Shown: positions 150 to 13,954 of the stretch, in pieces
Layout: every line of letters begins with the position of its first letter
Position numbering within the stretch: position 1 is the stretch's first letter
Assembly: GCA_002794465.1 (NCBI GenBank)
Contig: MTSL01000122.1
Coordinates: forward strand, 1-17,109
Reading direction: 5' to 3'
Source: Paramicrosporidium saccamoebae KSL3
Taxonomy: Eukaryota; Fungi; Cryptomycota
Length of the DNA stretch: 17,109 nt
Translations under genes and position numbers: made by a program
Notes under the pieces: generated by a model
Told to the model about the DNA's origin: nothing
Seen by the model: the letters and a program-made list of their open reading frames with translations, nothing else
Databases searched by the model: none

Positions 150-3100
150 ATGAAAGGATATCCATGCAACCTGGTACAGAGTGGAAAGATACAGGATGCC
201 TCATTGCATGTCCGTAGACCATTCAAGAAACGTCTCTATGTAATGCCATTCGTCGTTGCTTACAGCTCGTGGGTCTTGCTTGCCGCGTATTTAACAAGTG
301 TGGGTCGCTGGGAGGATTTGTGGTATGCATTACTCGTGGCTATCGCAGGAGTTCATTTTCTGACGGTAATGGCGTGTCAGTGGAGTGTCAACTTTGATGC
401 GTTTGTTACGTGTTACTCTGCGGGATTGGATTATGCCGAAATGATACTGGTGTCGCCACGGGAGCATGGCGGAAAGGCCGCCTTGGCGCCCCTCAACCGT
501 AACGCAGGAGAGATGAACTTTGTGTTCCAACGAATGAAATTTATTTACCGGGAGAACAAGAAATGTTTCAGCAAGCTGGAATATCCTAGCAGTCTTCTTC
601 TTGGCGATTATGACAAGGCCACTGGACTGAATGAGGCGCAGGCTGAGAAGGCAAAGACTTATTTTGGGAAGAATCGTTTTGAGATGCCAATGCCGACGTT
701 TATAGAGTTGTTCAAAGAACACGCAGTGGCGCCTTTTTTCGTCTTCCAAGTCTTTTGCGTGGGATTGTGGTGTCTCGATGAGTTTTGGTACTATTCCGTG
801 TTCACCTTGGTGATGCTGGTAATGTTCGAGTCGACAGTGGTTGGACAGCGTCTGAAGAATATGACAGAATTCCGGGCCATGTCCCTGCCGAATGTTGACG
901 TCAAAGTGAAACGTTCTGGTAAATGGGTGTCGCAAAAGACGGAAGAGCTGCTTCCGGGAGATCTAGTGTTGCTGGAGGGGACGGGCGGAGAGGAGATTAC
1001 GGTGCCTTGTGATTTGGTTCTGATTGATGGAACTTGTATTGTCAATGAGGCCATGATATCGGGCGAATCGACTCCCATGTTGAAAGAGTCTATTAGAGAG
1101 GCGAGACAGGAGGAAGAATTTGAGCGACCTTTGGATCTGGACTTGGACCGCAGTCATTTGCTCTTTGGCGGGACTAAGATTCTGCAAATCACCAAGAATA
1201 CGGAGAATGGATGTGTGGCCTTTGTGATGAGAACTGGCTTTAGCACTCTGCAAGGAAAGCTGGTGAGAACCATGATGTTTACCAGCGAGAGGATGACGGC
1301 CAACAATTTGGAGGCCTTTGCCTTTATTCTGTTTCTGCTCATCTTTGCCCTAGCTGCGGCGGGCTATGTACTCTATTATGCCTGGAATGATCCTACTCGA
1401 AGCAAATTCAAGCTGCTCCTTGAAGGTGCACTGATCATTACTGCCGTAGTCCCTCCAGAGCTGCCGATGGAGCTTTCATTGGCGGTGAACAATTCATTGA
1501 TGGCGCTTAGCAAGTTTGCCATCTTTTGTATGGAGCCCTTCCGCATTCCGTTGGCTGGAAAGTTGGATGTGTGCTGCTTTGACAAGACGGGCACCCTGAC
1601 GGGAGAGAATTTGGTGGTAAAGGGAGTGGCAGGGATTAATGATGACCACGAGGCAGTGTTGTCGGACATTGAGAATATTCCGACAAACACGCACATGGTG
1701 ATTGGCACATGTCATTCGCTGTTCAAGGTTGGAGACAAAGTGGTAGGTGATCCCATGGAAAAGACTGCACTCGCTTTTGCCAAGTGGACAATGTCCTCCA
1801 ATGACACCTTGCAGAACGGAAAACGCACGGCCCGCATCTTGCATCGCTTTCCCTTTTCCTCGGCGCTGAAGCGAATGTCATGTCTGGTGCAGACAGGCTC
1901 ATCTATCATGGTCACATGCAAAGGTGCACCTGAGGTGGTGGAGGCAATGTTGACAAATATTCCTTCATGGTATCGAGAGGCATTTACCCATTTGGCACAC
2001 AGCGGCGCCCGCGTGTTAGCTCTGGCCCACAAGACCCTCCCATCGACATTTTCCAATGAGCAAGCTAAACATTATCAGAGAGAAAAGGCAGAGTCAGGAC
2101 TCACATTTGCAGGATTTCTGATCTTTCATTGTCCCCTCAAGCCCGACAGTAAGGAAGCAGTGCGGGCCCTGAAAGAGTCGCTGCACCACGTGGTTATGAT
2201 TACCGGCGACAATGTGCTCACGGCGGTTCATACGGCCTTTGAGCTGGAGATGGTCCGAAAACCAGTACTGCTGCTGCAAGAGAGTGGGGAGGGGGTTGAG
2301 GCTGGACTTGGAATTGGAGTCGACATTTTTGACCGGCACGATCCAACTGCCGTCCCACCGAAAATATTTCTAACTATGGGAATGGACTTTTCTGGATACG
2401 ATTTGGCAATGACGGGAGGGGCGGTTGATATAATGGCCAAACGCAACCAACAGCTGCTAAAGGAGATTATAACGCGCGTCACTGTGTTTGCACGTGCTTC
2501 TCCGTCGCAAAAGGAACTGATCCTCACTACCTACAAGACCCTGGGCCACACGACGTTGATGTGTGGCGATGGAACAAATGATGTGGGCGCACTGAAGCAG
2601 TCACACGTGGGAGTGGCGTTGCTGGATGGAAAGCCAGAGGATTTGCCCAAGATTATCAAACAGATGCAAACGGTGAATATGAAGAAGCGACAGATTGCAA
2701 TGGAAAAGTCGCGTTTGGCCATGGAGCAGAAATGGGCGGGGAATATTGATGGCGCAGGTAACTTGGATACCCGGCGGAGACAGTTTGAAATACAGAAAAA
2801 GATTGAGGCCATGACGATGAGTTTGGAGGAAGAGGAAGCACCAATGGTGCGACTGGGCGATGCCTCGGTGGCAGCACCATTTACCTCGAAAATTTCCACC
2901 ATCAGTGCCGTGTGCAATTTGGTGCGTCAAGGCAGATGCACATTGGTGACGACGATGCAAATGTACAAGATCCTCGCCCTGAATTCGCTCATCTCTGCCT
3001 ATGGCCTGTCAGTGCTGCATCTCGAGGGCATCCGATATGGCGATTTCCAAGTTACTGTGACCGGAATGCTATTGGCCTCGTGTTTCCTCTTCCTCAGCAA

Positions 3101-3639
3101 AGCTCAGCCCATTGAAAAGTTGGCTGCCAAACGTCCCCAACCGAACATTTTCAATTGGTACGTATTGATGAGCGTCCTACTGCAATTCCTGCTGCATGTG
3201 TCAGTGCTGTATTATGTGGTCAGTGCGGCATCACGGTGGTCATTTAAGATTTGGGTGGATGAGAATACGCGATTTGTGCCCGGCCTGGTGAATACGACTG
3301 TCTACCTGATCTCGCTACTGATGCAAGTTTCCACCTTTGTCGTCAATTATCAGGTATACTTTTATCGACAATGACTCATTCTGTTAGGGACGTCCGTTCA
3401 GAGAGGGATTATTGGAAAATCGGCCATTGAGGAACAGTTTGGCCATGGTCAGCGCCATTGCTGTGGTGGCTGCCAGCGAACTGTATCCCGAATTCAACGA
3501 ATGGCTGCAATTAGTGCCCATGCCGCCGATGGTGCGGATGAAGCTGCTGGGAGCCATGGCAGTGGATTTTGGAGGCTGCCTGCTTATCGAGTACGTGTGT
3601 GAGCGCTTTCTCTTTGACTCTCGGCCCCGCATTCAATGA
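150..3639 (+). CDS. SPF1: P5A-type ATPase (Spf1/ATP13A1 ER transmembrane-helix dislocase), ~1151 aa
   Basis: Motifs: CCFDKTGTLT phosphorylation site, P5A signature VVPPELPMELS, SGES actuator, MITGDN and MCGDGTNDVGAL. Exons are 150-3353 and 3388-3639. Removing the 34-nt intron 3354-3387 (GTATAC...TTAG) restores the conserved NYQ|GRPFRE junction and joins ORF 3412-3639. Confidence 0.95.
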
Positions 3640-3835: not shown

Positions 3836-5073
3836 CTAATTAGTATTTGCTTGTATCGGCTTGTAATAGGAAATGCATTCGAGTAGGGATGCCCAGTCGA
3901 TGCTATTTGTGCCATCCTCCAGGTCGATGGGTTCGTCATGGACAATCCAATGGGCAGTGTCAAGCTTCTCTGGGTTACGAGTCACCTTTCCACCACCGGC
4001 AGTAATGAGTAGGGCTAGATCGGATTTTTTTGGCGCTGGTGCCCTAAACGTTCCCTCCAAGTGAAACGAAAGCCCCTCAAATAATCGCGCCCCTGTTGAA
4101 GAAATGGACTTTTCGACTGCATATGTGGCGCCCGCCACTTCATCGCCTGTAATCAGAAATGGCGTTTCATCGACAAACTTGTCGGCTGACAGAGATGCAA
4201 GATACCAATCGTAGCTGACAATTAACAGTCCATCTAGCAGTCCGCGAAGATATTTGACAGTCCGTGGACAGTGCCGTTCGGCGTTGCAATGGCTGATCAG
4301 ATGCGTTACATCTGGCATATGGCGGGATCTAAGAGTGGCCTTTACGTGTCCAATCTTGTCGTGTGAAGACGTAATGATATCCTAAGAAAATTAGTAGATC
4401 ATTATGCCGTTGATACCCTTTGATCCTCGCTCAGCCCAGTACTTAGAAAGACGTATGTCTTTTTCCTGGATCTGGATCCGGATCTATTGTCTGTCCCACT
4501 GGAGTCGTCTCTACTGCCTGTCTTACTGGGTTTCTTACTGGCTGCCTTACTGGCTGTCTTACTGGCTGCCTTACTGGGTGTCATATTGAGTGTCTTTTCA
4601 ATAGGGTTGGGCCTGTTAGCTGCTCTTATGCTGGAAGGTGTCCTTGGCTTCTTTGCGCTATGAACTGTTTCCACTAGTTGCAGCGACGATTTTTTCACAG
4701 GAGTTTTTGCACTGCGAGTCATTTCTACCATTTGCAGTGGTGACTTTCTAACAGGCGTCCTGGGCGTCTCCAATCGCAGCGCCCCCAATTCCGATGCTGG
4801 TGTTTTTACGCTCGGTGACGTTACAACACTGGCGAGCTTTCGGACGCACCCGACAATGGTGCCATACATGGCGTTTCTTCTTAAATTTTTGATTAGGAAG
4901 CGCGTCCCGCACCGAGGACACTGGCGTCCTGTAATGCATCGCCTATTCATCAATGATGGCAGACATTGTTACTGACAAAAGGTGTGCTCGCATTCTCCAA
5001 TAGTATACGGGTTAACTTGCAGACCTGAGCAGACGTGACAGTTCAGGAGGGCGGCAAGACGCGCGAGCGACAT
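3836..5073 (-). CDS. BRCA1/BARD1-like protein: N-terminal C3HC4 RING plus C-terminal tandem BRCT, ~390 aa
   Basis: Exons (minus strand) are 5073-4973, 4942-4417 and 4381-3836. Introns are 4972-4943 (30 nt, GTAACA...ATAG) and 4416-4382 (35 nt, GTATCA...CTACTAA...TTAG). The spliced RING reads CHVC-x12-CEHTFCQRC-x5-CPRC. BRCT1 contains YVFLSTGLSEDQ...VTHLI...RTVKYLRGLLDG...IVSYDW, and BRCT2 contains RLFEGLSFHLEGTF...LITAGGGKV. The total of 1173 nt is in frame. Confidence 0.85.
4521..4580 (-). repeat. Coding 12-nt tandem repeat, 5 copies (xSKx tetrapeptides in the RING-BRCT linker)
   Basis: Plus-strand units are tcttactgggtt / tcttactggctg / ccttactggctg / tcttactggctg / ccttactgggtg, encoding TPSKAASKTASKAASKKPSK. 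Confidence 0.85.
4651..4758 (-). repeat. Coding 54-nt duplication (2 x 18 aa) in the RING-BRCT linker
   Basis: TPVRKSPLQMVEMTRSAK is followed directly by TPVKKSSLQLVETVHSAK. Confidence 0.75.
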
Positions 5074-5118
5074 TTACTGGAGCCAGCCAAGAAGACGAAA
5101 TTTATTATCCGCGGACCA

Positions 5119-5549
5119 ATGATGCTTCGACTATTCCGTTCTTTTTCGACAAGCAGACCGGTGGATGCGGTGCAAAGGCTTTATTTAGGCAATTTATATC
5201 GTCTCACCGGAAGGGTAATCGTTCATAAATGGTTTGTTACGTGTAGCAAGTTCCGGTTGAATATCAGTTCGACCAAGTGGAGACGACGAGCAATGTGGAT
5301 AGTGTGAGTGAAGAGGGCGTGGGTAGAGATTTGAGTGGTGTGAGTAAAGAGAGTGTGGATAGAGATTTGAGCGGGGTGAACAAAGAGAGCACGGAAAAAG
5401 AGGGCATGTACAAAGAAAGTGTTGACAGCCCTGCTACATCTACTATGACAAATGCCGAAATGGCCAAAGTCATTGAATCTACACTGGGACCCACTCAAAT
5501 ATTGGCCAAACCGATAGTAAAGGGACGCAAAAAGAAGGCAGCCAAATAA
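5119..5549 (+). CDS. Small hypothetical protein with a mitochondrial-presequence-like N-terminus, ~132 aa (weak resemblance to ATP synthase subunit h/F6)
   Basis: Exons are 5119-5214 and 5247-5549. The 32-nt intron 5215-5246 (GTAATC...GTAG) joins the two supplied ORFs in frame. The N-terminus MMLRLFRSFSTSRPVDAVQRLYL is Arg/Ser-rich and free of acidic residues up to D16, and the protein ends in the basic tail KGRKKKAAK. The family call is weak. Confidence 0.65.
5304..5400 (+). repeat. Coding 36-nt tandem repeat, about 2.7 copies (VS-E/K-E-x-V-x-RDLSG)
   Basis: Units are gtgagtgaagagggcgtgggtagagatttgagtggt (5304-5339), gtgagtaaagagagtgtggatagagatttgagcggg (5340-5375) and a partial third copy from 5376. 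Confidence 0.8.
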
Positions 5550-5557
5550 AGATGGTA

Positions 5558-5687
5558 TGAGTCAATGTAATCAGGTGATAATGTGACCCATTAGAATCGG
5601 GTTATAGTAGGGAATATTGGATTCTGTATGAGATGACTCACTCTACCAATATCAATCTCATTGTTATTGCAATTGATAGGTGAGTCA
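5558..5687. promoter_or_regulatory. Cluster of three perfect Gcn4/CpcA/AP-1-type sites, TGA(C/G)TCA, upstream of the LysRS gene
   Basis: TGAGTCA at 5558-5564, TGACTCA at 5634-5640 and TGAGTCA at 5681-5687, plus a one-mismatch TGACCCA at 5584-5590. All lie in the 211-bp spacer before ATG 5761. Confidence 0.7.
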
Positions 5688-5721
5688 CAATGCACCCATG
5701 TCAAGATGATTACGACACGGG

Positions 5722-5728
5722 TATAAAA
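5722..5728 (+). promoter_or_regulatory. TATA-box-like element of the LysRS gene
   Basis: TATAAAA lies about 33 nt upstream of ATG 5761 and downstream of the TGASTCA cluster. Confidence 0.5.
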
Positions 5729-5760
5729 GAGCCGGGGATAACGACCTTGACACCACCATA

Positions 5761-7482
5761 ATGAGTAACGTTGAGGAGACTGTACAAGTCGCAGAGGTTG
5801 CAGAAGTCGCAGAGAGTGTATCGAAGCTGTTTCTTGATGAAGCCTCGGGAGAGATGGTCTCCAAGAGCGAATTGAAGCGTCGTGCCAAACACCGCGAGAA
5901 GGATGCGGCCAAGGCTGAGAGACTGGCATCGGCCCCCGCCAGCACCACTCCCGAAGAGCAGTTGGACCCAAACCAGTATTTTGAGATGCGTCTGAATGCA
6001 CTGGCCAAGACCAAGGAGGCGGGCAAGAATCCCTACCCCCACAAGTTCCTTGCCAGCATGACCATTCCTGAATTTGTTGCCAAGTACGCCCATCTCGCCG
6101 AGGGAGAGCATTTGGAGAATGAAGTTGTCTCTGTTGCCGGACGTGTGTATGTCAAGCGCGAGTCGGGTGCCAAGTTGATCTTTTACGACGTGCAGGGAAT
6201 GGGCCAGAAGCTGCAAGTAATGGCACAGGCACAGTACTCGGAGTCGCAGGAAGAATTTACCACCACGCATGACGCCATCTATGCTGGTGATATTGTGGGA
6301 CTAATTGGTTTTCCAGGGCGCAGCAAGAAGGGAGAGCTGTCTATTTTCCCATACGAGACAGTACGACTCAGCGGATGTCTCCGAATGTTGCCCAAGCAGC
6401 ACTTTGGACTCAAGGACCAGGAAGTGCGGTACCGTCGCCGCTATCTCGATCTGATCATGAATAATGATGTCCGTAATCGCTTCATTGCACGCACCAAGAT
6501 TATCAACTACTTGCGCAACTTTTTGAACAATCTTGGGTTCTTGGAAGTTGAGACGCCCATGATGAATATGATTGCTGGAGGAGCCACGGCCAAGCCGTTC
6601 ATCACTCACCACAATGACCTGTCGCTGGATCTGTTCCTCCGTATCGCGCCTGAGCTGTTCCTGAAGCAGCTTGTCATCGGAGGCTTGGAGCGTGTTTATG
6701 AGATTGGACGTCAATTCCGCAACGAAGGAATTGATCTGACCCACAATCCCGAGTTTACCACCTGCGAGTTCTACTGGGCCTATGCCGACTATAACGACCT
6801 GATGAAGGTGACGGAGGATTTCTTCACCGGACTTGCCAAGGAAGTCACAGGAAGCCAGACAGTCATTTACCATCCAAAGGGACGTGAGACTGAGCCGCTG
6901 ACTATTAACTTTGAGGGACCATATAAGCGGATCCCACTCATTGGTGGTCTTGAAGAGGCTCTGAATGTCAAATTCCCCCCGGCTGACCAGCTCGACACTG
7001 AAGAGGCCAACAAGTTCCTCTCGGATCTGTGTGCCAAGCATGGTGTCGAGTGTTCTGCTCCCCGAACCACTGCTCGACTCCTTGACAAGCTTGTGGGCGA
7101 CTTTATCGAGCCCCATTGCATCAACCCCACTTTTATTACTGATCATCCCAAGATTATGTCGCCCCTTGCCAAGGATCATCGTACCATTCCCGGCCTCACT
7201 GAGCGCTTCGAACTCTTTGTTGCTACCAAGGAGCTCGTCAATTCTTACACGGAGCTGAACGATCCCGTGGAGCAGCGACAGCGCTTTGCCGGACAGGCGG
7301 CCGATAAGGCGGCGGGTGATGACGAGGCGCAAGTTTTGGACGAGTCGTTCTGCCAGGCACTCGAGTACGGTCTTCCCCCCACGGCTGGATGGGGTTTGGG
7401 AATTGATCGGTTGACCATGTTCTTGACCGATGCAAACAACATTAAGGAAGTTCTTCTCTTCCCTGCCATGAAGCCCGAATAA
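5761..7482 (+). CDS. KRS1: Cytosolic class II lysyl-tRNA synthetase, 573 aa, intronless
   Basis: Eukaryotic N-terminal extension ([10 protein letters not shown]), OB-fold anticodon domain (VSVAGRV...KLIFYDV), [11 protein letters not shown], motif 1 FLEVETPMM, motif 2 [15 protein letters not shown] and motif 3 [17 protein letters not shown]...[12 protein letters not shown]. Confidence 0.98.
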
Positions 7483-7484
7483 GT

Positions 7485-7544
7485 ATATGTGGGTTAGAGA
7501 AATAATATGTTGGTTAGGGAAATAACATGTGGGTTAGGGAAATA
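7485..7544 (+). repeat. 20-bp minisatellite, 3 copies, containing telomere-like GGTTAG(G/A)G
   Basis: Units are atatgtgggttagagaaata / atatgttggttagggaaata / acatgtgggttagggaaata, starting 3 nt after the LysRS stop codon. Confidence 0.9.
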
Positions 7545-7676
7545 ATATAAAAGTAAACGAGAGAGAATATACAAGTAAACAGGAGAGAATACACGAATAA
7601 ACGAGAGAGAATGCACAAGTAAACGGGAGAGGATACACAGGCAAGCTAGAGATAATATACAAGTAAACGAGAGAGG
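7545..7676 (+). repeat. 22-bp purine-rich minisatellite, 6 copies
   Basis: The consensus is ATAYACAAGTAAACGAGAGAGA. Units start at 7545, 7567, 7589, 7611, 7633 (divergent) and 7655. Confidence 0.9.
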
Positions 7677-7800
7677 ATATATTTACGGATCAGATATAAA
7701 AGGCATTGGCTACAAATCTTTATGAAACAAATGTGACTATAAAAGACGAAAATTAGAATATCTGATCTGAAATATAACACGGAACATGGGATAATAATGT

Positions 7801-9428
7801 CTATTCGGGAATGATATGGGATCTTAAAGGTAGTAACACTTGGGCCTCGTCAGCTATACATGCCTGGTGTTTTATGCCCCGGAAGCAATAGTCGATCCTC
7901 AGCAGTTTGGCATGTCCCACTGCAATATCATAGAATCCCAGCAGATTTGACTTGCTACCCTTTTCTAAACATATTTGCGAATCAACAACAAGCATCTGTA
8001 GTGGGATTGTGACGTCCAGGACATTGGTTGGGTTGGGGGCCTGGAGGGGAGAACCCATGGGAGAGGCACGTTCATAGTAAGCACTTGTAATTATGAGGCC
8101 ATTGGGTTCTTCTTGCAGTCTTTTTCGCTGATAGAATGGTTCCATCAATGTCACTGCCATTGCCGTTTCGTTCCTCCGTTCCTCCACCAGATGAATCTGC
8201 GTGGCGACAAAGTCGCTCCAATACCGCTCCTTACAATGTCGTCTCCACGGCTCCAAAGCAAAATTGTGCACTACCAGCCCAACGAGGGAAGGAAGAGCAA
8301 CACCTAGGAGGATAGAGTGGGAGGAAAGTTCGCGGGAAATGTAGATGGGCAAGATGAGAGAGAGATCACGGAGGGTATGGACAATCTTGAGACCCACTCC
8401 AATGGGACCGGCTTCGAAATGAAAGGCAGTCTTTGTGTCAGAGTCCGAGGAACGCACCAAACCCAAACCGAGCAATACTGGGCCAGCCGTATTCAGTTTC
8501 ACCTTGAGAGTGTTAGTGTCATCCAATTGTTGGGCGTATTTTGCACTCAGACTGATGCGCTCATCGGCCAGTTGACAGGTCAACGAGGCAGGATTGGTCT
8601 CGCTGATGTAGCCGAGACCAGCTGCAATGTTACCATTACTAAAAGTGAGACTGGCTGCCAGTTGATCAACAATAGCCCGGGAGATGGTGACCTGATAGCC
8701 TGGTTCAATGGCGCCGCCATAGTAATCAGTGGTAAGCAATACGTCCATGCTCATTTTTTGAGAAAGTGCATAGGAAAGTCCCCATCCGAGACGACGCTGG
8801 CTGCCGACGGCAAACTCTAGTCGACCATAAAGTCGCTCGCTCATCTGTCGAGTGATGGTGCCGCTAACAATGCCATTTCCTTGACCATTCTTTGTAGCCG
8901 CTGAATAAGCGACGCTGTACGAGGTTCCATCCTCCAAAGTACCCTCTAATTTGTGTGTCAATGCAACGTTGCTGACTTGTGGCACGTAATCTGACCAGAC
9001 CAATTCATTCTGAATCGGCGTCCAATCCTCCAGCAACATGGACGCATCAATCCCTGCCGAAACAACGGTGCGACTGCGGAGGCCGCTACGACGACGAGCC
9101 AATTCATCGCGGAGCTTCTGCAAGTCGCCATCTAGATAGTCGCCCAGCTGCTTGGCGGCCTCCACACCCTGTATTCCGTGTTCGTCATATATTGGACGAA
9201 GCTGTGCATCGCTTAATACCGAGTAGGCAGTGTGAATTTTGTTGAATATGCACTGGGCCGCCGTCTTTTGCAGCTCATCGAGGTGTTTGTCGGGATGAAA
9301 GAGCACACACATTCGCCGGTAGGCATTCTTGACATCCTCATTCGTCGCCTAATTGTCAGTCCACTGCATTTCGATACGGTGCGGGAAACGTTTAGCAGAC
9401 TGTAATAGTCGGGCTGCGAGTCGGTCAT
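7801..9428 (-). CDS. DNAJC11: DnaJ subfamily C member 11-like (J domain plus C-terminal DUF3395), ~532 aa
   Basis: Exons are 9428-9378 and 9348-7801. The 29-nt intron 9377-9349 (GTATCG...ACTGACAATTAG) gives DYYSLLNVSRT|ATNEDVKNAYRRMCVLFHPDK (J domain with HPD). The C-terminal GLIITSAYY...VLDVTIPLQ...SKSNLLGFYD...LPLRSH is typical of the family. Confidence 0.88.
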
Positions 9429-9431
9429 GGG

Positions 9432-9871
9432 ATGGACCCCGTGGTTTCTGCATATCCCCGTCCACCCGACTACTTCAATGGGCTCAGCCTAGAGGAGATA
9501 CGGGCCATGGCTCCACCCTCCCCACCAGAACAAGAGTGTAGCACATTTGGCGTTCCAATTATGCGGGATGGTCAATGGTGTCCTGCCGTCTCGGCATTTA
9601 CCGAACTGGAGACTGAGAATAAGAGTGCGAGTGAGCTGGTCGCCTTGGCCAAGACGGTGAAGGAATCAGTGTTATTGAACTATTTGCAACTCTTGGAACA
9701 TGCCACCACACCGAGCGAGAATTGTTTAGAGGATTTAAAAAAGGCACAGCATGCATTTATGCACATTTTGGTCGAACTAAGGAGGAGACAGGTATTTCAT
9801 TAATTTGGATACTAACCGTTTAGAGTTTGCTTGCGGTTAGAGACGAATTGGAACGGCTGTTGAATGTTTAG
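9432..9871 (+). CDS. MED7: Mediator subunit 7-like protein, ~135 aa (short C-terminus)
   Basis: Exons are 9432-9791 and 9824-9871. The 32-nt intron 9792-9823 has a perfect TACTAAC branch point (9810-9816). Med7-like blocks are SAYPRPPDYF, PPSPP...STFG, SVLLNYLQLL and HILVELRRRQ|SLLAVRDELE. Confidence 0.6.
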
Positions 9872-10069: not shown

Positions 10070-10381
10070 TCAGGCGATTTGGGCAATGGCAGCTTCCACC
10101 TTGCTTGGGTCGGCACCAACAACAGTCTCCACCTTTTTTCCATCCTTAAAGAACATGAATGTCGGCATGGCAGTAATTTGCATCGCACCGGCGATTTCTG
10201 CAGCCTGGTCCACGTCGACCTTGATAAACGTGACACCAGTGTACTTGGCGGCCCATTGTTCGAATTTGGGGGAGATGGCCTTGCAGGGACCGCACCAGAC
10301 GGCATAAAAGTCAATGGCGACGGGCTTGCCGCTAGAGATGAGCTCTTGGAGGGCGGACAGTGAGGTAACAGACTGGACCAT
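10070..10381 (-). CDS. TRX: Thioredoxin, 103 aa
   Basis: IDFYAVWCGPCKAISP active site, FIKVDVD, cis-Pro loop AMPTFMFFKDG and VVGADP. Confidence 0.97.
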   Translation of the reverse strand: MVQSVTSLSALQELISSGKPVAIDFYAVWCGPCKAISPKFEQWAAKYTGVTFIKVDVDQAAEIAGAMQITAMPTFMFFKDGKKVETVVGADPSKVEAAIAQIA

Positions 10382-10437
10382 AGCTAAGGGAAATACTATT
10401 TCGTTGTAACTCTGCCGCCTGAATCGTCAGAAAGCAG

Positions 10438-11041
10438 ATGGAAGGTGGGCCTTCGTAGCTTGTCTTAACCTGTACTAGAAGCTGCCATTAGACAGCGGCT
10501 ATTAACAGATGAAAAACTTTTCAAGAGGATAGCAAAGCGATATGTGACACTGGAAAAGTCACCCGTTCTGGAAGCCGACATGTACAGTCTTGGTTAATTG
10601 ACTCATTTTAGACCGCAGCTGCAGGTTGCCTTGCAAACAGAGTTGGAATTGTTAGAACTGTGTTTGGTCCGGCAAGAACGTTCCCTTCAGGTACATGGAA
10701 CGGAAGAGCAGTACTACAAAAGCGAGCAGACAAGGCTGGAGACGGAGAGGGCAACTCTTCAGGAGGAAATCTCCTCCCTGAAGGAAGTCTTGACTGTAGA
10801 AACGCGTCTCCGGTCAAACAAGGATGAGTACGATGCACTTGCCAAAAAGATTCTCAAGTATCCAACACGAGCCGAACTGATGGGGTCATTGGAGGAAGTT
10901 GAAGTTGACATCCTTGCCATGGCCAATCAGCAGGCTGACATCCAACGGTTCATCGAAAAGGACGCGCTTGCTGGATACGAAGCTATAAAAGCATTTAAAG
11001 AGGTAAAGAAGGATGTAGAGGCAGATCTTTGTTCCTTTTAA
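10438..11041 (+). CDS. THOC7: THO complex subunit 7 (Mft1/THOC7 family), ~179 aa
   Basis: Exons are 10438-10444, 10479-10581 and 10612-11041. Introns are 10445-10478 (34 nt, GTGGGC...CTAG) and 10582-10611 (30 nt, GTACAG...TTAG). The spliced N-terminus is MEEAAIRQRLLTDEKLFKRI, and the family motif NKDEYDALAKKILKYPTR is present. Confidence 0.8.
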
Positions 11042-11086
11042 TAAAGCATGTAAAATCTGGACGGTGGGTGCCGGGGATTGGTTGGG

Positions 11087-13603
11087 ATGAATCCTGAACA
11101 AGAGTATTATAGATTCGACCTTGATCGAACCCTCGGACTGATATGCACGCCGCTGTGCAACACCGTATACGACTCTAAGGGAAAATATGCCATCTCTGGA
11201 GCTTTAGAGTACATGTATGTATGGAACATTCGCACGGGCGAAGTGGTGCAAAAGTGGCACGATAGCTCGAATACGGCGCAGGCTGTGATTGTTGCGTCCT
11301 CTCCTGCAGACGCTAATGTGTTTGCAGTTGGATATTCTGATGGCACTGTCCGTCTCTGGAGCCTGAAAGATGGCAGTCTGGGGCTAGTATTTAGTGGACA
11401 CAAGAACCAAGTCACCTCTCTCGTCTTTGATGCGTCCGGAACAAGACTGGCCAGCGGTGGTCGCGATAATGCCATTGTTATCTGGGACTTGGTAAGCGAA
11501 ATGGGACTTTTCCGTCTAAACGGACACACCAGTGCTGTAAATGGACTATTTTTTACCAAAAATGGAAACGCCCTAATTTCCATCTCCAAAGATACGCTGC
11601 TAAAGGTATGGGACCTGCCCACCCAACACTGCGTCGAAACGGTAGTCCTGCACCACGCCGAGATTACTGATATTGTTGCAAGCCATGACGGAATCGTCAC
11701 TGTGGGGAGCGACAACAAAATGCGCCTTTTTACAGTAAATGAGGAGCACTTGACGACCAACACTGCAGAAGTGAGCATTGTGCAGCTGGTGGAAACTATC
11801 AACCGCAGTTCAAATGAGCGAGCCTTGACTATTGTAAGGGACCTGAAGGACAAGTATTTTGCTGTGCTTGGAGCAGACCGGTCTATTGAGATCTGGAAGC
11901 GTCGATCGGAGGAGGAGTATGCCAAGAAGAGTGGAAAGAAGAATGCATCTCGGTTCAAACAGGTCCGCTACACTCGTCTGCAGTCCAAGGCACGGTCTAT
12001 TGAGTTTACACCAGGCTGGAAGGAAAAATCTACCTTGAAGCTTTTGGCCGGATTCATGGACAACCAAATTGGCGAGGTCATTGTTCCCCTAGAGACCACG
12101 GGGGAGCTTTCCTATCCGGCGGCCATTGATGCTGCGGGTCATCGCGGAGAGTGCAAAACGTGTGCCTTTAATGCTGATGGAAGTCTGTTTGCCTCGGCGT
12201 CGAAGGAGTGTATTAAAGTCTGGAACCCGGAAACTGGTGCGCTTGTTAGAACCATTGAAAGCGAAGATTCCACCGCCCTTGCATTCCTAAGCGACGATTC
12301 GGGATTGATCATTGGTGACATGGAGGGAGTTATTCACTTGGCCGATCTTGCAAGTGGTGACATTTTAGACTCGAACAAGGCCCATGAGGGTGCAGTACGC
12401 TGCTTGGCTCTACGTCCTGATATGAAAGGCATGATGACGGGCAGTGCTGACAAGAGTATCAAATTTTGGGAATTTAAATCTTTAAAGGGCTCGGTGGGTA
12501 AAAAGCTAAAGATGATCAAGACTTTGCAGATGAACGACGAGGTTTTGGGCTTAAAGTATTCTCCGGACATTAAGTACATTGCCGCGGCAACGTTGGATCT
12601 GACCATCAAGGTGTTCTTTGAGGATTCGCTCCGATTCTATCTGTCACTATATGGACATAAATTGCCCGTCACTGGAATGGAGATTTCCGAGGACAGCAAA
12701 ATGCTGATTTCAGTCTCATCTGACAAGAATATTAAGATTTGGAGTCTTGAGTTTGGCGAATGCCGCAAGTCCATTTTCGGACACTCTGAGGCAATTACGG
12801 GCATTGTAATGATTCCGAGAACGAAACAGTTTATCACCTGCTCCAAAGACAAGACCATCAAGTACTGGGATGCTGAAAAGTTCCAAGAACTCCAAAAGAT
12901 AACTGCACATCAAGGCGAGATTTGGGCAATATGCATTAATCCGTCTGGTACCTCGATAGTTTCAGTTTCGAGAGATCGGTCCATCCGCGTTTGGAAGAGC
13001 GGGTCTGAGATGCTCTTTCCTGATGAAGAACGGGAATTGGAGCTCGAAAGCCAATTTGAAAAATCGCTGTTGGAGGACAACAAGCACGAACAAGAGGACC
13101 CGTCTGAGACTGGCCGTGCGCCTACCAAAACACTAACGTCGATGAAGGCGGGTGAACGCATCATGGAATGCATTGAGGCTGCTGATGACGAACGTCGCAA
13201 GTGGGACGAATATCATGCCACAAAATCGCAGGGATTGGCAGCACAAGAACCCACACCGGGTGCATTTTTCCTTGCACTTGGACGAGACAAGACGCCGTCC
13301 GAATTTGTAATGTCGGCCTTTGAGCGGATCCCTTTGCCTGATATTGAGGAAGCTTTGCTGTGCTTGCCGACAAAGTCGCTACCGTCGCTCCTTTACTATC
13401 TTCATGAATGGCTCAAGGGACGCCGTAATGTTGTGCTGAGCTCACGCATCTTGGATCTGATTCTTCGCCTGTTCCATCGGTCGATTATTGCCAACTCTGG
13501 ACTGCGAGTACTACTAGAGTCTATCCGTGACACTGAGCGAGAAACCTTAAAAGAGCTGAAGAATGTTATCGGATTCAACAATGTCTGTATGCAAATGGCC
13601 TAA
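11087..13603 (+). CDS. UTP12: WD40-repeat SSU processome subunit Utp12/Dip2/WDR3, ~838 aa
   Basis: The first in-frame ATG is 11087 (MNPEQEYYRF). Multiple WD repeats include GHKNQVTSLVFDASGTRLASGGRD, GLFRLNGH and LSLYGHKLPV...DKNIKIWSLEFGECRKSIFGH. The C-terminal Utp12 domain reads LPDIEEALLCLP...VIGFN. Confidence 0.93.
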   Translation: MNPEQEYYRFDLDRTLGLICTPLCNTVYDSKGKYAISGALEYMYVWNIRTGEVVQKWHDSSNTAQAVIVASSPADANVFAVGYSDGTVRLWSLKDGSLGLVFSGHKNQVTSLVFDASGTRLASGGRDNAIVIWDLVSEMGLFRLNGHTSAVNGLFFTKNGNALISISKDTLLKVWDLPTQHCVETVVLHHAEITDIVASHDGIVTVGSDNKMRLFTVNEEHLTTNTAEVSIVQLVETINRSSNERALTIVRDLKDKYFAVLGADRSIEIWKRRSEEEYAKKSGKKNASRFKQVRYTRLQSKARSIEFTPGWKEKSTLKLLAGFMDNQIGEVIVPLETTGELSYPAAIDAAGHRGECKTCAFNADGSLFASASKECIKVWNPETGALVRTIESEDSTALAFLSDDSGLIIGDMEGVIHLADLASGDILDSNKAHEGAVRCLALRPDMKGMMTGSADKSIKFWEFKSLKGSVGKKLKMIKTLQMNDEVLGLKYSPDIKYIAAATLDLTIKVFFEDSLRFYLSLYGHKLPVTGMEISEDSKMLISVSSDKNIKIWSLEFGECRKSIFGHSEAITGIVMIPRTKQFITCSKDKTIKYWDAEKFQELQKITAHQGEIWAICINPSGTSIVSVSRDRSIRVWKSGSEMLFPDEERELELESQFEKSLLEDNKHEQEDPSETGRAPTKTLTSMKAGERIMECIEAADDERRKWDEYHATKSQGLAAQEPTPGAFFLALGRDKTPSEFVMSAFERIPLPDIEEALLCLPTKSLPSLLYYLHEWLKGRRNVVLSSRILDLILRLFHRSIIANSGLRVLLESIRDTERETLKELKNVIGFNNVCMQMA

Positions 13604-13695: not shown

Positions 13696-13954
13696 GGGAT
13701 CCGATGGACTTGGATTGTGCGACAGCCATCTAATATTTATCTAACCGGGATCCGATGGGCTTGGATTGTGCGACAGCCATCTAATATTTATCTAACCGGG
13801 ATCCGATGGGCTTGGATTGTGAGACATCCATCTAATATTATCTAATCGGGATCCGGTGGGCTTGGATTGTGAGACATCCATCTAATATTATCTAATCGGG
13901 ATCCGGTGGGCTTGGATTGTGAGACATCCATCTAATATTTATCTAATCGGGATC
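13696..13954. repeat. 50/51-bp intergenic minisatellite, 5 full copies plus a 6-nt partial
   Basis: Units start at 13696, 13747, 13798, 13848 and 13898, with a partial copy at 13949. The consensus is GGGATCCGRTGGGCTTGGATTGTGMGACAKCCATCTAATATT(T)ATCTAAYC. There are no spacers between copies. Confidence 0.97.

Follow-up and report, generated by a model that had tools for sequence, protein, structure and literature searches.

The bidirectional promoters of animals, plants and yeast classically retain a non-coding stretch of ~100-1000 bp that contains two separate transcription start sites (TSSs) placed back to back. In the hyper-compacted genomes of some eukaryotes (nucleomorphs and microsporidia), overlapping transcription was reportedly described by Williams et al. 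in 2005, a study cited in PMC6009652 and PMC3629993. At mammalian genes, the TISU element has been described around the start codon, with the consensus SAASATGGCGGC. In the microsporidian Encephalitozoon cuniculi, 5′ untranslated regions (UTRs) are shorter than 7 nt by RACE, start-proximal CCC/GGG signals are found at nearly all genes, the head-to-head pair S16/L13 lies 35 bp apart, and promoter signals rarely fall inside adjacent coding sequences (CDSs), while overlapping transcription of both strands occurs (PMC2803860). Microsporidian gene starts are the closest analogue of the locus considered here, a divergent DNAJC11/MED7 pair in a stretch of 17,109 nucleotides (hereafter the window), in which the gap is 3 bp compared with the 35 bp of E. 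cuniculi. Tight head-to-head starts are already known as a kind, and this junction is a new and extreme example.

Direct reading of positions 9426-9434 gives CAT (9426-9428), GGG (9429-9431) and ATG (9432-9434), set within the bases gtcggtCATgggATGgaccc (9420-9439), i.e., the DNAJC11 start codon on the minus strand, then three spacer bases, then the MED7 start codon on the plus strand, just as a preliminary description of this DNA had reported. The same description had pointed out that one triplet reads GGG ahead of one ATG and CCC ahead of the other, which is true and is simply the base pairing of that triplet. Taking head-to-head to mean divergent genes with <1 kb between their 5′ ends, the pair qualifies with 3 bp between its start codons, and the earlier assertion that no intergenic promoter or UTR could fit holds, since the spacer is 3 bp long; this means that promoters and leaders lie inside the partner CDS, or that leaders are almost absent. 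The spacer and both starts recur base for base (CATGGGATG, positions 511-519) in L007, an independent JGI metagenome contig, and 29 nt across the junction are identical between the two sequences. Because the junction recurs in spite of a synonymous divergence (dS) of ~0.7-0.8 between L007 and the window, an assembly artefact is excluded. In DNAJC11 and MED7 alike, a conserved N-terminal motif begins at most seven codons from the sole possible in-frame ATG, only 39 bp lie between the codons at which conservation begins in DNAJC11 and in MED7, and these comparisons indicate that the annotated starts are the true starts. DNAJC11, a mitochondrial J-protein, and MED7, subunit 7 of the Mediator middle module, form a real, evolutionarily conserved head-to-head housekeeping pair in the compact nuclear genome of an uncultured, fungus-like opisthokont. 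The junction is also spanned by an imperfect inverted repeat (9394-9484; arms 9394-9413 and 9465-9484, 75% complementary), which arises because the N-terminal parts of both proteins, encoded on opposite strands, contain P-D-Y-(Y/F). RNA folding across the junction revealed no structure beyond chance on either strand (z-scores −1.2 and +0.8), and a scan of 9200-9700 for promoters and terminators of bacterial type, a scan not relevant for a eukaryote, returned nothing.

The minus-strand gene encodes a DNAJC11 of 532 aa and contains one 29-nt intron. Exon 1 (9378-9428) comprises 17 codons, MTDSQPDYYSLLNVSRT, in which helix I of the J-domain starts; the GT..AG intron (9349-9377; GTATCG...ACTGAC...TAG) restores the J-domain frame when spliced, and exon 2 (7801-9348) carries the rest of the J-domain, the beta-barrel, the C-terminal DnaJ-like_C11_C domain and the stop codon. 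In the spliced product, Pfam DnaJ covers residues 7-72 (E 8e-20) and HPDKH can be read directly, hence the HPD motif is present, followed by the beta-barrel (PF22774, 4e-11) and DnaJ-like_C11_C (DUF3395, PF11875, 3e-30), while named animal DNAJC11 proteins matched at 1e-41 to 1e-50. No spliced DNAJC11 product was found in the protein collection that we searched. The translation confirms that DYY begins at residue 7 and, as had been stated, no in-frame ATG lies upstream before the stop at 9491-9489. With a dN/dS of 0.04 against L007, the gene is under strong purifying selection. The intron is precisely missing in L007 and is also missing in L001 and L015, both genomic contigs, while it occupies the same codon position in L003, L005, L008, L012, L013, L014 and L016. 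Since L001 and L015 lack it too, genomic intron loss in L007 is more parsimonious than derivation of that contig from RNA, and for the same reason we did not adopt the proposal that L007 resembles a cDNA and thereby proves that the DNAJC11 leader is long.

MED7, on the plus strand, encodes 135 aa and has one 32-nt intron. Its first exon (9432-9791) reads as 120 codons, MDPVVSAYPRPPDYF...ELRRRQ, identified by its open reading frame (ORF) and by Pfam Med7; splicing of the intron (9792-9823; GTATTT...TACTAAC...TTTAG) gives SLLAVRDELERLLNV followed by the stop, an arrangement conserved in L007 and L008, and exon 2 (9824-9871) supplies 15 codons plus TAG, as supported by translation, Pfam and comparison with L007. 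The Pfam Med7 profile scored 31.1 bits against a gathering cut-off of 25.8, residues 21-131 aligning to profile positions 49-166. A phmmer search of PDB with this single, divergent 135-aa sequence gave no Med7 match, and the sole match in the protein collection was the product of L007. In the MED7 frame, an in-frame stop (9393-9395) is followed by no ATG until 9432. The motif SAYPRPP was correctly placed from residue 6 by the preliminary description: SAYPRPPDYF makes up residues 6-15, a proline-rich N-terminal motif conserved in 10 lineages, and across these 10 the N-terminus aligns from the first Met. The shared core of this motif, AYP(L/R)PPDY(F/Y), matches the stretch rich in proline at the N-terminus of canonical MED7 proteins (xPPPPxY type). 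Like its neighbor, MED7 is under strong purifying selection (dN/dS = 0.09 against L007).

The head-to-head DNAJC11/MED7 arrangement was recovered in 10 environmental lineages, the window included, and a check of synteny and spacer length in these relatives, which had been proposed earlier, showed start-to-start distances of 3-139 bp: 3 bp in the window and in L007, 8 in L001, 20 in L003, 37 in L005, 47 in L012, 92-101 in L016, 110 in L008, 117 in L014 and 139 in L013. Lengths such as 8, 20, 37 and 47 bp cannot be divided by three, and the spacer is thus non-coding. The window combines the shortest spacer (shared with L007) with the shortest N-terminal tails. An ancestral shared 5′ region of ~100-140 bp between the starts has been deleted down to 3 bp in the window’s lineage, which stands at the far end of a progressive shrinkage of the shared promoter region; the DNAJC11 tree, built from HSPs stitched onto window coordinates, is window-biased and unresolved, and this spacer evolution is not polarised by it. 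Several assemblies of independent origin also show the wider gene order THOC7-Trx-MED7-DNAJC11-LysRS. In L015, DNAJC11 has no adjoining MED7, and at a distant MED7 locus from the metagenome scan (L017, 5-sequence alignment) no DNAJC11 coding was seen in the ~280 bp read upstream. In a LysRS tree, the window falls within a clade made up entirely of environmental sequences, outside the named fungi (Rozella among them), a position that is approximate given that the tree has no non-fungal outgroup; among PDB entries, LysRS scored 753 bits against human, below the 810-865 bits of early fungi.

Tiny 5′ regions are a genome-wide habit that can be seen in the window. For example, 56 bp lie between the starts of thioredoxin and THOC7, the gap from the THOC7 stop to the WDR3 ATG is 45 bp, and 75 bp separate the end of tRNA-Asn (the sole Rfam match in the whole window) from the ATG of a P5A-ATPase, while the 3′-3′ spacers measure 198, 318 and 461 bp and have minisatellites within them. 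LysRS carries a canonical TATAAAAG at −38 to −31 from its ATG, from which, given the usual ~30-bp TATA-to-TSS distance, a leader of less than 10 nt is predicted.

At the conserved DNAJC11/MED7 pair, the sequence evidence makes it on balance probable that the promoters are embedded in the first codons of the partner and that the 5′ leaders are very short. With no non-coding DNA left, the core promoter of each gene would lie within the first ~10-20 codons of the other, that of MED7 possibly also taking in the tiny DNAJC11 intron 1. Transcription would most likely start a few to ~25 nt upstream of each ATG, giving near-leaderless mRNAs with an antisense overlap between their 5′ ends that would not exceed a few tens of nucleotides, and both pre-initiation complexes would share the same ~60-80 bp of DNA, which implies that they could not assemble simultaneously on one template. 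The CATG at the DNAJC11 start creates an out-of-frame plus-strand ATG (9427-9429) only 5 nt before the MED7 ATG, in the strong context G(−3)/G(+4), which opens a 21-codon ORF (9427-9492, TAG at 9490-9492) and makes a very short MED7 leader more likely; unless the AUG at 9427 is bypassed, this leader would be ≤4 nt. For DNAJC11, the nearest upstream ATG is found at −25, also out of frame, and opens a 34-codon ORF.

We identified a candidate MED7 core promoter, GTAATAGTCGGG (plus strand, 9402-9413, −30 to −19 from the MED7 ATG), in which a weak A/T patch is joined by CGGG; its reverse complement gives the DNAJC11 codons for P-D-Y-Y, and it is unchanged in L007. On the minus strand, a putative promoter-proximal element of DNAJC11, CCACGGGGTCCAT (9432-9444, −16 to −4 from the DNAJC11 ATG), is MED7 codons 1-4 read backwards and contains GGGGT, with the equivalents CACCGGGATCCAT in L001 and GGCCGGGTCCAT in L003. 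Three words, CCGGG, GGGGT and CCGGGG, show strand-specific enrichment at −60 to −1 of 50 curated starts, CCGGG occurring in 11 sequences versus 1.4 expected (p 9e-8; the 50 starts include orthologues and are not fully independent). They fall mostly at −32 to −15 and are kept in the WDR3 and LysRS orthologues of very diverged lineages. The window pair has CGGGGT and TCGGGC instead of the exact G-run motif C[CA]GGG, and its A/T patches near −30 (GTAATAG, GATATG) are poor TATA matches. Between the window and L007, a single sequence pair, MED7 dS is 3.6-fold lower over codons 1-60 (0.38) than over codons 61-120 (1.38), with 7 versus 20 synonymous codon changes (Fisher p 0.008). The 5′ codons of DNAJC11 show no such reduction (dS 0.77 vs. 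0.87), and the embedded MED7 promoter is less well supported than the embedded DNAJC11 promoter.

The low dS over MED7 codons 1-60 (~180 bp) would also fit a DNAJC11 leader or promoter that reaches that far, and one alternative, the overlapping-transcript option of the preliminary description, which we regard as possible but rather unlikely, is that both leaders are long, with promoters placed 50 to several hundred nt inside the partner, extensive 5′ sense-antisense overlap, and first AUGs that are bypassed or regulatory. In E. cuniculi, overrun of transcription and overlap between transcripts have been documented (PMC2803860), and L007 spans all of MED7 yet lacks the DNAJC11 intron, as would be expected of a long spliced DNAJC11-sense RNA; however, genomic contigs L001 and L015 lack it as well. 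Any MED7 leader longer than 4 nt would moreover include the strong-context AUG, whose 21-codon ORF extends beyond the MED7 start, and any DNAJC11 leader longer than 24 nt the out-of-frame AUG of the 34-codon ORF. The LysRS TATA at −38 predicts short leaders in this genome, where several other 5′ junctions are also just 45-75 bp.

It is considerably less probable that one start is wrong, such that MED7 initiates at Met26 (9507) or an upstream coding exon has gone unrecognised and real non-coding space exists. Met26 is nearly invariant in the clade and sits 15 nt past the stop of the 9427 ORF, where re-initiation is conceivable, and the introns of this genome are tiny and easily missed. Against this, AYP(L/R)PPDY(F/Y) precedes Met26 and would be lost; it is conserved as protein with synonymous codon variation in 10 lineages, from which we conclude that it is translated. 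In five of the lineages M-D-P stands directly at the first MED7 ATG, and the next DNAJC11 Met would remove helix I of the J-domain. Relatives’ spacers of 8, 20, 37 and 47 bp and longer do not preserve frame and are not coding, which also disfavours an upstream spliced exon. The preliminary description had named this exon and the Met26 start as outcomes that would overturn its interpretation, together with non-expression of the MED7-like ORF, which is likewise disfavoured by the dN/dS values for both genes. A still smaller probability attaches to 5′ ends that arise in trans or far away, by spliced-leader trans-splicing or polycistronic transcription, making local promoters unnecessary. The 45 bp between the THOC7 stop and the WDR3 start could suggest co-transcription, and AG dinucleotides occur at −13 (MED7) and −20 (DNAJC11), but one polycistronic transcript cannot serve a divergent pair, an acceptor at −13 would still keep the upstream AUG in the MED7 leader, and no recurrent polypyrimidine-AG pattern was seen upstream of the 50 starts. 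Spliced-leader trans-splicing is not known from fungi or their relatives. That the contig is chimeric, or one gene a pseudogene, has a vanishingly small probability: the window does come from a single metagenome-type contig of an uncultured organism, but the identical junction in L007 and the recurrent five-gene order speak against an artefact, and dN/dS values of 0.04 (DNAJC11) and 0.09 (MED7) against a dead locus.

Eukaryotic genome compaction reaches a real extreme at this junction. If the mechanism of embedded promoters and very short leaders holds, DNAJC11/MED7 would be close to the tightest head-to-head protein-coding pair possible in a eukaryotic nuclear genome, two Pol II promoters would work without any private DNA, sharing their bases with codons that are constrained to encode helix I of the J-domain and the proline motif at the MED7 N-terminus. 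With spacers graded from 139 to 3 bp, the relatives offer a comparative handle on promoter migration into coding sequence, on the minimum eukaryotic leader length and on the tolerance of overlapping pre-initiation complexes. The locus also points to a fungus-like clade with unusual gene-start architecture that is apparently diverse and found in many public metagenomes, and it carries a warning for annotation, as assumptions of minimum intergenic or UTR length mis-call starts in such genomes. A broader reading, which we offer tentatively and hold to be rather less probable than not, is that this lineage independently evolved near-leaderless Pol II genes in the style of microsporidia or Giardia, with promoter elements routinely placed in neighboring CDSs. 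The MED7 M-D-P and DNAJC11 P-D-Y-Y codons might then be dual-use, with a coding and a promoter function, C[CA]GGG(G)W at −15 to −32 might be a new lineage-specific start-proximal promoter element, and the spacers from 139 to 3 bp might be a natural record of a bidirectional promoter being absorbed into coding DNA.

Compared with described systems, the locus resembles animal, plant and yeast bidirectional promoters in that divergent housekeeping genes have kept their arrangement in different lineages, which suggests that their 5′ regulation may be shared or coupled; unlike in the classical case, no non-coding DNA is present and the TSSs would have to coincide or overlap. A likeness to TISU would lie in a dual transcription/translation element around the ATG, through which housekeeping genes with very short leaders can be translated. 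By direct reading, the MED7 start is TGGGATGGACCC and the DNAJC11 start TCCCATGACCGA; TISU was rejected, its consensus being absent, as was a Kozak-type explanation, whose consensus is likewise absent at the junction. As in microsporidia, the genome is compact and fungal-related, with a C or G triplet immediately upstream of each ATG of the pair. This GGG/CCC start triplet is present at the pair and at WDR3, whereas, in contrast to E. cuniculi, GGG/CCC falls within −10 to −1 at just 15 of the 50 curated starts against a background of 15%, and a general microsporidian start signal in this lineage was rejected on this basis. The enriched word here is instead C[CA]GGG(G)W at about −15 to −32, there is ample room in the 3′ spacers, where minisatellites lie, the window’s proteins are neither shortened nor fast-evolving in the microsporidian manner, and the LysRS tree (microsporidia unsampled) sets its clade outside the named fungi. 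The transcripts of nucleomorphs and microsporidia, which start or end inside neighbors where spacers are too short, offer a further likeness to the window; those genomes, remnants of endosymbionts or parasites, are compacted at the 5′ and the 3′ ends of their genes, whereas the window is compacted mainly at 5′ ends.

Positions 9420-9439 of the window, read directly, are gtcggtCATgggATGgaccc, in which CAT (9426-9428), the start codon of the mitochondrial J-protein gene DNAJC11 on the minus strand, and ATG (9432-9434), that of the Mediator subunit gene MED7 on the plus strand, are separated by GGG (9429-9431). DNAJC11 (9428-7801, minus) reads MTDSQPDYYSLLNVSRT from its ATG at 9428 and then breaks; on excising a 29-nt GT...AG intron (9377-9349, minus, GTATCG..ACTGAC..TAG) the frame is regained, NVSRT being followed across the splice by ATNEDVKNAYRRMCVLFHPDKH, and the 532-aa spliced product carries a complete J domain (Pfam DnaJ, residues 7-72, E 8e-20) as well as the DNAJC11 beta-barrel and DnaJ-like_C11_C domains of Pfam. 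MED7 (9432-9871, plus) reads MDPVVSAYPRPPDYF from its ATG at 9432, with a first exon ending at 9791, a 32-nt intron containing a TACTAAC box (9792-9823) and a second exon of 15 codons closed by TAG (9869-9871), and its 135-aa product passes the Pfam Med7 model (31.1 bits vs. a gathering score of 25.8). The protein ends shortly past the conserved ELRRxQ...ELxRLL helix, a short form also seen in the metagenome loci L007 and L008; MED7 of yeast and human is 220-233 aa long. Neither frame holds an upstream in-frame ATG, from 9428 to the stop at 9491-9489 for DNAJC11 or from the stop at 9393-9395 to 9432 for MED7. The preliminary description had argued that no promoter or leader fits between the two genes; re-reading the window bore out its coordinates and residue numbers, including the TAG it placed near 9490, which is this DNAJC11-frame stop, and we find its reasoning on the pair sound and the finding real.

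Both genes are functional, under selection and correctly started, 3 bp apart. Against L007, the close relative used for comparison, dN/dS is 0.04 for DNAJC11 (166 codons, dS 0.83) and 0.09 for MED7 (120 codons, dS 0.71). When the lineages are aligned, MED7 proteins match from the first methionine, which is invariant, the A(Y/F)P(L/R)PP motif lies within 3-16 residues after it, and an M-D-P N-terminus is found in five lineages. The motif codons vary synonymously between lineages (GCA TAT CCC CGT CCA CCC GAC TAC TTC vs. GCT TAT CCT CTT CCG CCA GAT TAT TTT), so the motif is translated, and this protein-level conservation rules out initiation at the downstream Met26 (9507), which had been named as an alternative start.

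In contigs that encode relatives of DNAJC11 or LysRS, the junctions were determined by visual reading and tblastn. The order THOC7 - thioredoxin - MED7 - DNAJC11 - LysRS recurs among these relatives, and the comparison of synteny and spacers that the preliminary description had proposed found the pair kept, with 3-139 bp between start codons: 3 bp in the window and L007 (the same CATGGGATG), 8 bp in L001/L002, 20 bp in L003/L004, 37 bp in L005, 47 bp in L012, 92-101 bp in L016, 110 bp in L008/L009, 117 bp in L014 and 139 bp in L013. Spacer lengths that are not multiples of three mark the spacers as non-coding. No MED7 adjoins DNAJC11 in L015, and no DNAJC11 coding was found within ~280 bp upstream of MED7 in L017, a distant MED7 locus. 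L014 carries a perfect TATAAA overlapping its MED7 start codon (4453-4462, GGTATAAATGGGC). By hand counts between the codons for D of DYY (DNAJC11) and A of AYP (MED7), the anchor-to-anchor distance is 39 bp in the window and L007, 95 bp in L001, 98 bp in L003, 103 bp in L005, 116 bp in L012, 168 bp in L014, 179 bp in L016, 196 bp in L013 and 197 bp in L008. L001 and L003, at about equal distance, have a long low-complexity DNAJC11 N-terminal tail (Ser/Pro runs) that looks like former spacer captured via an upstream ATG, and the spacer of the window lineage seems to have been shortened by real deletion; upstream-ATG capture and deletion thus seem to be two processes that shrink it. The pair is ancient within the clade, and its shrinking spacer reaches its extreme in the window.

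The DNAJC11 intron itself varies among these loci. In L007 its 29 nt are precisely missing, which confirms the intron model, and the MED7 intron is kept. The position is filled in L003, L005, L008, L012, L013, L014 and L016. L001 and L015 lack the intron too, so its absence from L007 is simplest as another genomic loss. Most simply, this first intron is ancestral and has been lost repeatedly, the alternative being that L007 derives from RNA. As to the host, the nearest named relatives of the window LysRS are early-diverging fungi (Dimargaritales, Zoopagales, Mucorales, chytrids and Rozella; 63-67% identity, 810-865 bits; human LysRS scores 753 bits). In a LysRS tree built without a non-fungal outgroup, all named fungi, Rozella among them, form one clade (support 99), and the window falls outside it, in a clade of 13 purely environmental members (support 100). 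We class the lineage as an uncultured opisthokont that is probably related to fungi. Base composition within the environmental clade runs from AT-rich (L012, L016) to GC-rich (L003), and that region of the tree also contains two more environmental clades.

The window is eukaryotic and densely packed with genes, whose introns are tiny (29-34 nt). Its other genes are tRNA-Asn(GTT) (1-74, minus), P5A-ATPase (150-3374, plus), a RING/BRCT gene (5073-3836, minus), LysRS (5761-7482, plus), thioredoxin (10381-10070, minus), THOC7 (10438-11041, plus), which opens ATG GAA G before a 34-nt intron (4 nt after the ATG), WDR3/Utp12 (11087-13603, plus), an RRM/RS-domain gene and, last, an LRR gene. Start codons of thioredoxin and THOC7 lie 56 bp apart (10379-10440), the THOC7 stop is 45 bp from the WDR3 ATG (11039-11089), also preceded by GGG, and tRNA-Asn is 75 bp from the P5A-ATPase ATG. 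The 3'-3' spacers measure 461, 318 and 198 bp, and minisatellites occupy the LysRS-DNAJC11 3'-3' spacer (7485-7681, 20-22-nt units) and the region downstream of WDR3 (13696-13954, 51-nt unit x5, 96% matches). Roomy, minisatellite-bearing 3' spacers against tight 5' junctions indicate that compaction is not uniform and that it is specifically at 5' ends that almost no DNA is tolerated. Downstream of MED7, L007 terminates in a tandem repeat as well. Some ~690 bp (5074-5760) separate the start of the RING/BRCT gene (5073, minus) from that of LysRS, with a third minisatellite upstream of LysRS (5302-5390, 36-nt unit x2.5); a 90-aa open frame there (5277-5549, plus) includes the 36-nt repeats, has no family match and could represent a small gene that escaped recognition or an upstream exon of LysRS. 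Small unassigned ORFs also occur in this stretch in L008 and L010.

Several features bear on leader length. LysRS has a canonical TATA box, TATAAAAG, at -38 to -31 from its ATG at 5761 (5723-5730), and as the TATA-to-TSS distance is ~30 bp in most eukaryotes outside budding yeasts, a leader of <10 nt is predicted. Read on the plus strand, the CATG at the DNAJC11 start supplies an ATG (9427-9429) 5 nt before that of MED7 and out of frame with it; this ATG has G at both -3 and +4 and opens a 21-codon ORF ending at 9492, and a ribosome scanning a MED7 leader of >4 nt would meet it first. The nearest ATG upstream of DNAJC11 is at -25. For both genes these ATGs are constraints on leader length rather than measurements of it.

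Candidate promoter elements were sought by comparing the -60 to -1 regions of 50 curated start codons with 60-mers sampled at random from the same loci. Among these starts (8 in the window and 42 in ten related loci, orthologues included and hence not independent), CCGGG occurs in 11 sequences (expected 1.4, p 9e-8), GGGGT in 10 (expected 1.4, p 8e-7) and CCGGGG in 6 (expected 0.34, p 1e-6). The G-run word C[CA]GGG(G)[AT] is strand-specific and enriched upstream of start codons. Sense-orientation C[CA]GGG lies within -45 to -1 in 18/50 regions, mostly at -32 to -15, and is kept upstream of WDR3 in five lineages and of LysRS in six, including the AT-rich L012 and L016; its retention between lineages at only 50-80% protein identity suggests a functional role. 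We regard C[CA]GGG(G)[AT] as a candidate lineage-specific, start-proximal promoter element; it resembles C2H2 zinc-finger sites of the SYGGGG type.

At the junction, MED7 codons 1-4 on the DNAJC11-sense strand read CCACGGGGTCCAT in the window, CACCGGGATCCAT in L001 and GGCCGGGTCCAT in L003, a G-run-type word at -16 to -30 from the DNAJC11 ATG, and the DNAJC11 codons for P-D-Y-Y read GTAATAGTCGGG on the MED7-sense strand at -30 to -19. Since DNAJC11 (QPDYY) and MED7 (PPDYF) each specify P-D-Y-aromatic close to the N-terminus from opposite strands, the junction is flanked by an imperfect inverted repeat (arms 9394-9413 and 9465-9484). The window and L007 are identical over 29 nt spanning the junction. 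MED7 dS between them is 3.6-fold lower over codons 1-60, at 0.38 with 7 synonymous codon changes, than over codons 61-120, at 1.38 with 20 such changes (Fisher p 0.008), with no such synonymous gradient in DNAJC11 (0.77 vs. 0.87). The 29-nt intron indel, at -55 to -83 from the MED7 ATG, would place any spacing-sensitive MED7 promoter element within ~54 bp of the ATG. Promoter roles for all these elements are putative.

The account we consider probable is that each gene's core promoter lies inside its partner's first codons, with leaders that would run from a few to ~25 nt, mRNA 5' ends that would overlap by tens of nucleotides at most, and two pre-initiation complexes that would compete for the shared DNA. 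Its main rival, long overlapping leaders driven from promoters deeper inside the partner gene, is possible though markedly less likely, and both the upstream AUGs of the two genes and the position of the LysRS TATA count against it. That one of the start codons is wrong is improbable, as the MED7 motif upstream of Met26 is translated; trans-splicing or polycistrony is more doubtful still, and we give an artefact almost no credence.

The pair is of wider interest for three features: its conserved spacer series, running from 139 bp down to 3 bp, the asymmetry between tight 5' and loose 3' ends, and a candidate lineage-specific start-proximal motif in a widespread fungus-like clade. Classical bidirectional promoters, unlike the window pair, retain non-coding DNA between two separate TSSs. 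For translation from very short leaders the TISU element is a functional analogue (PMC3177215), but its consensus is absent at the MED7 and DNAJC11 starts. Among described systems the closest is the microsporidian gene start: RACE in E. cuniculi gave 5' UTRs of <7 nt, a CCC-like, rarely GGG-like, motif directly precedes the ATG, a head-to-head pair of ribosomal protein genes is spaced by 35 bp, transcription of both strands occurs, and signals in rare cases lie inside adjacent CDSs (PMC2803860). A microsporidia-type start signal is not general in the clade, GGG/CCC occurring within 10 nt of the ATG at 15/50 starts vs. a 15% background. The lone GGG/CCC triplet of the window pair resembles the microsporidian signal read from both strands, and by analogy the locus may work similarly. 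The pair is an extreme case, among compacted eukaryotic genomes, of head-to-head genes whose promoters would have been pushed into coding sequence.
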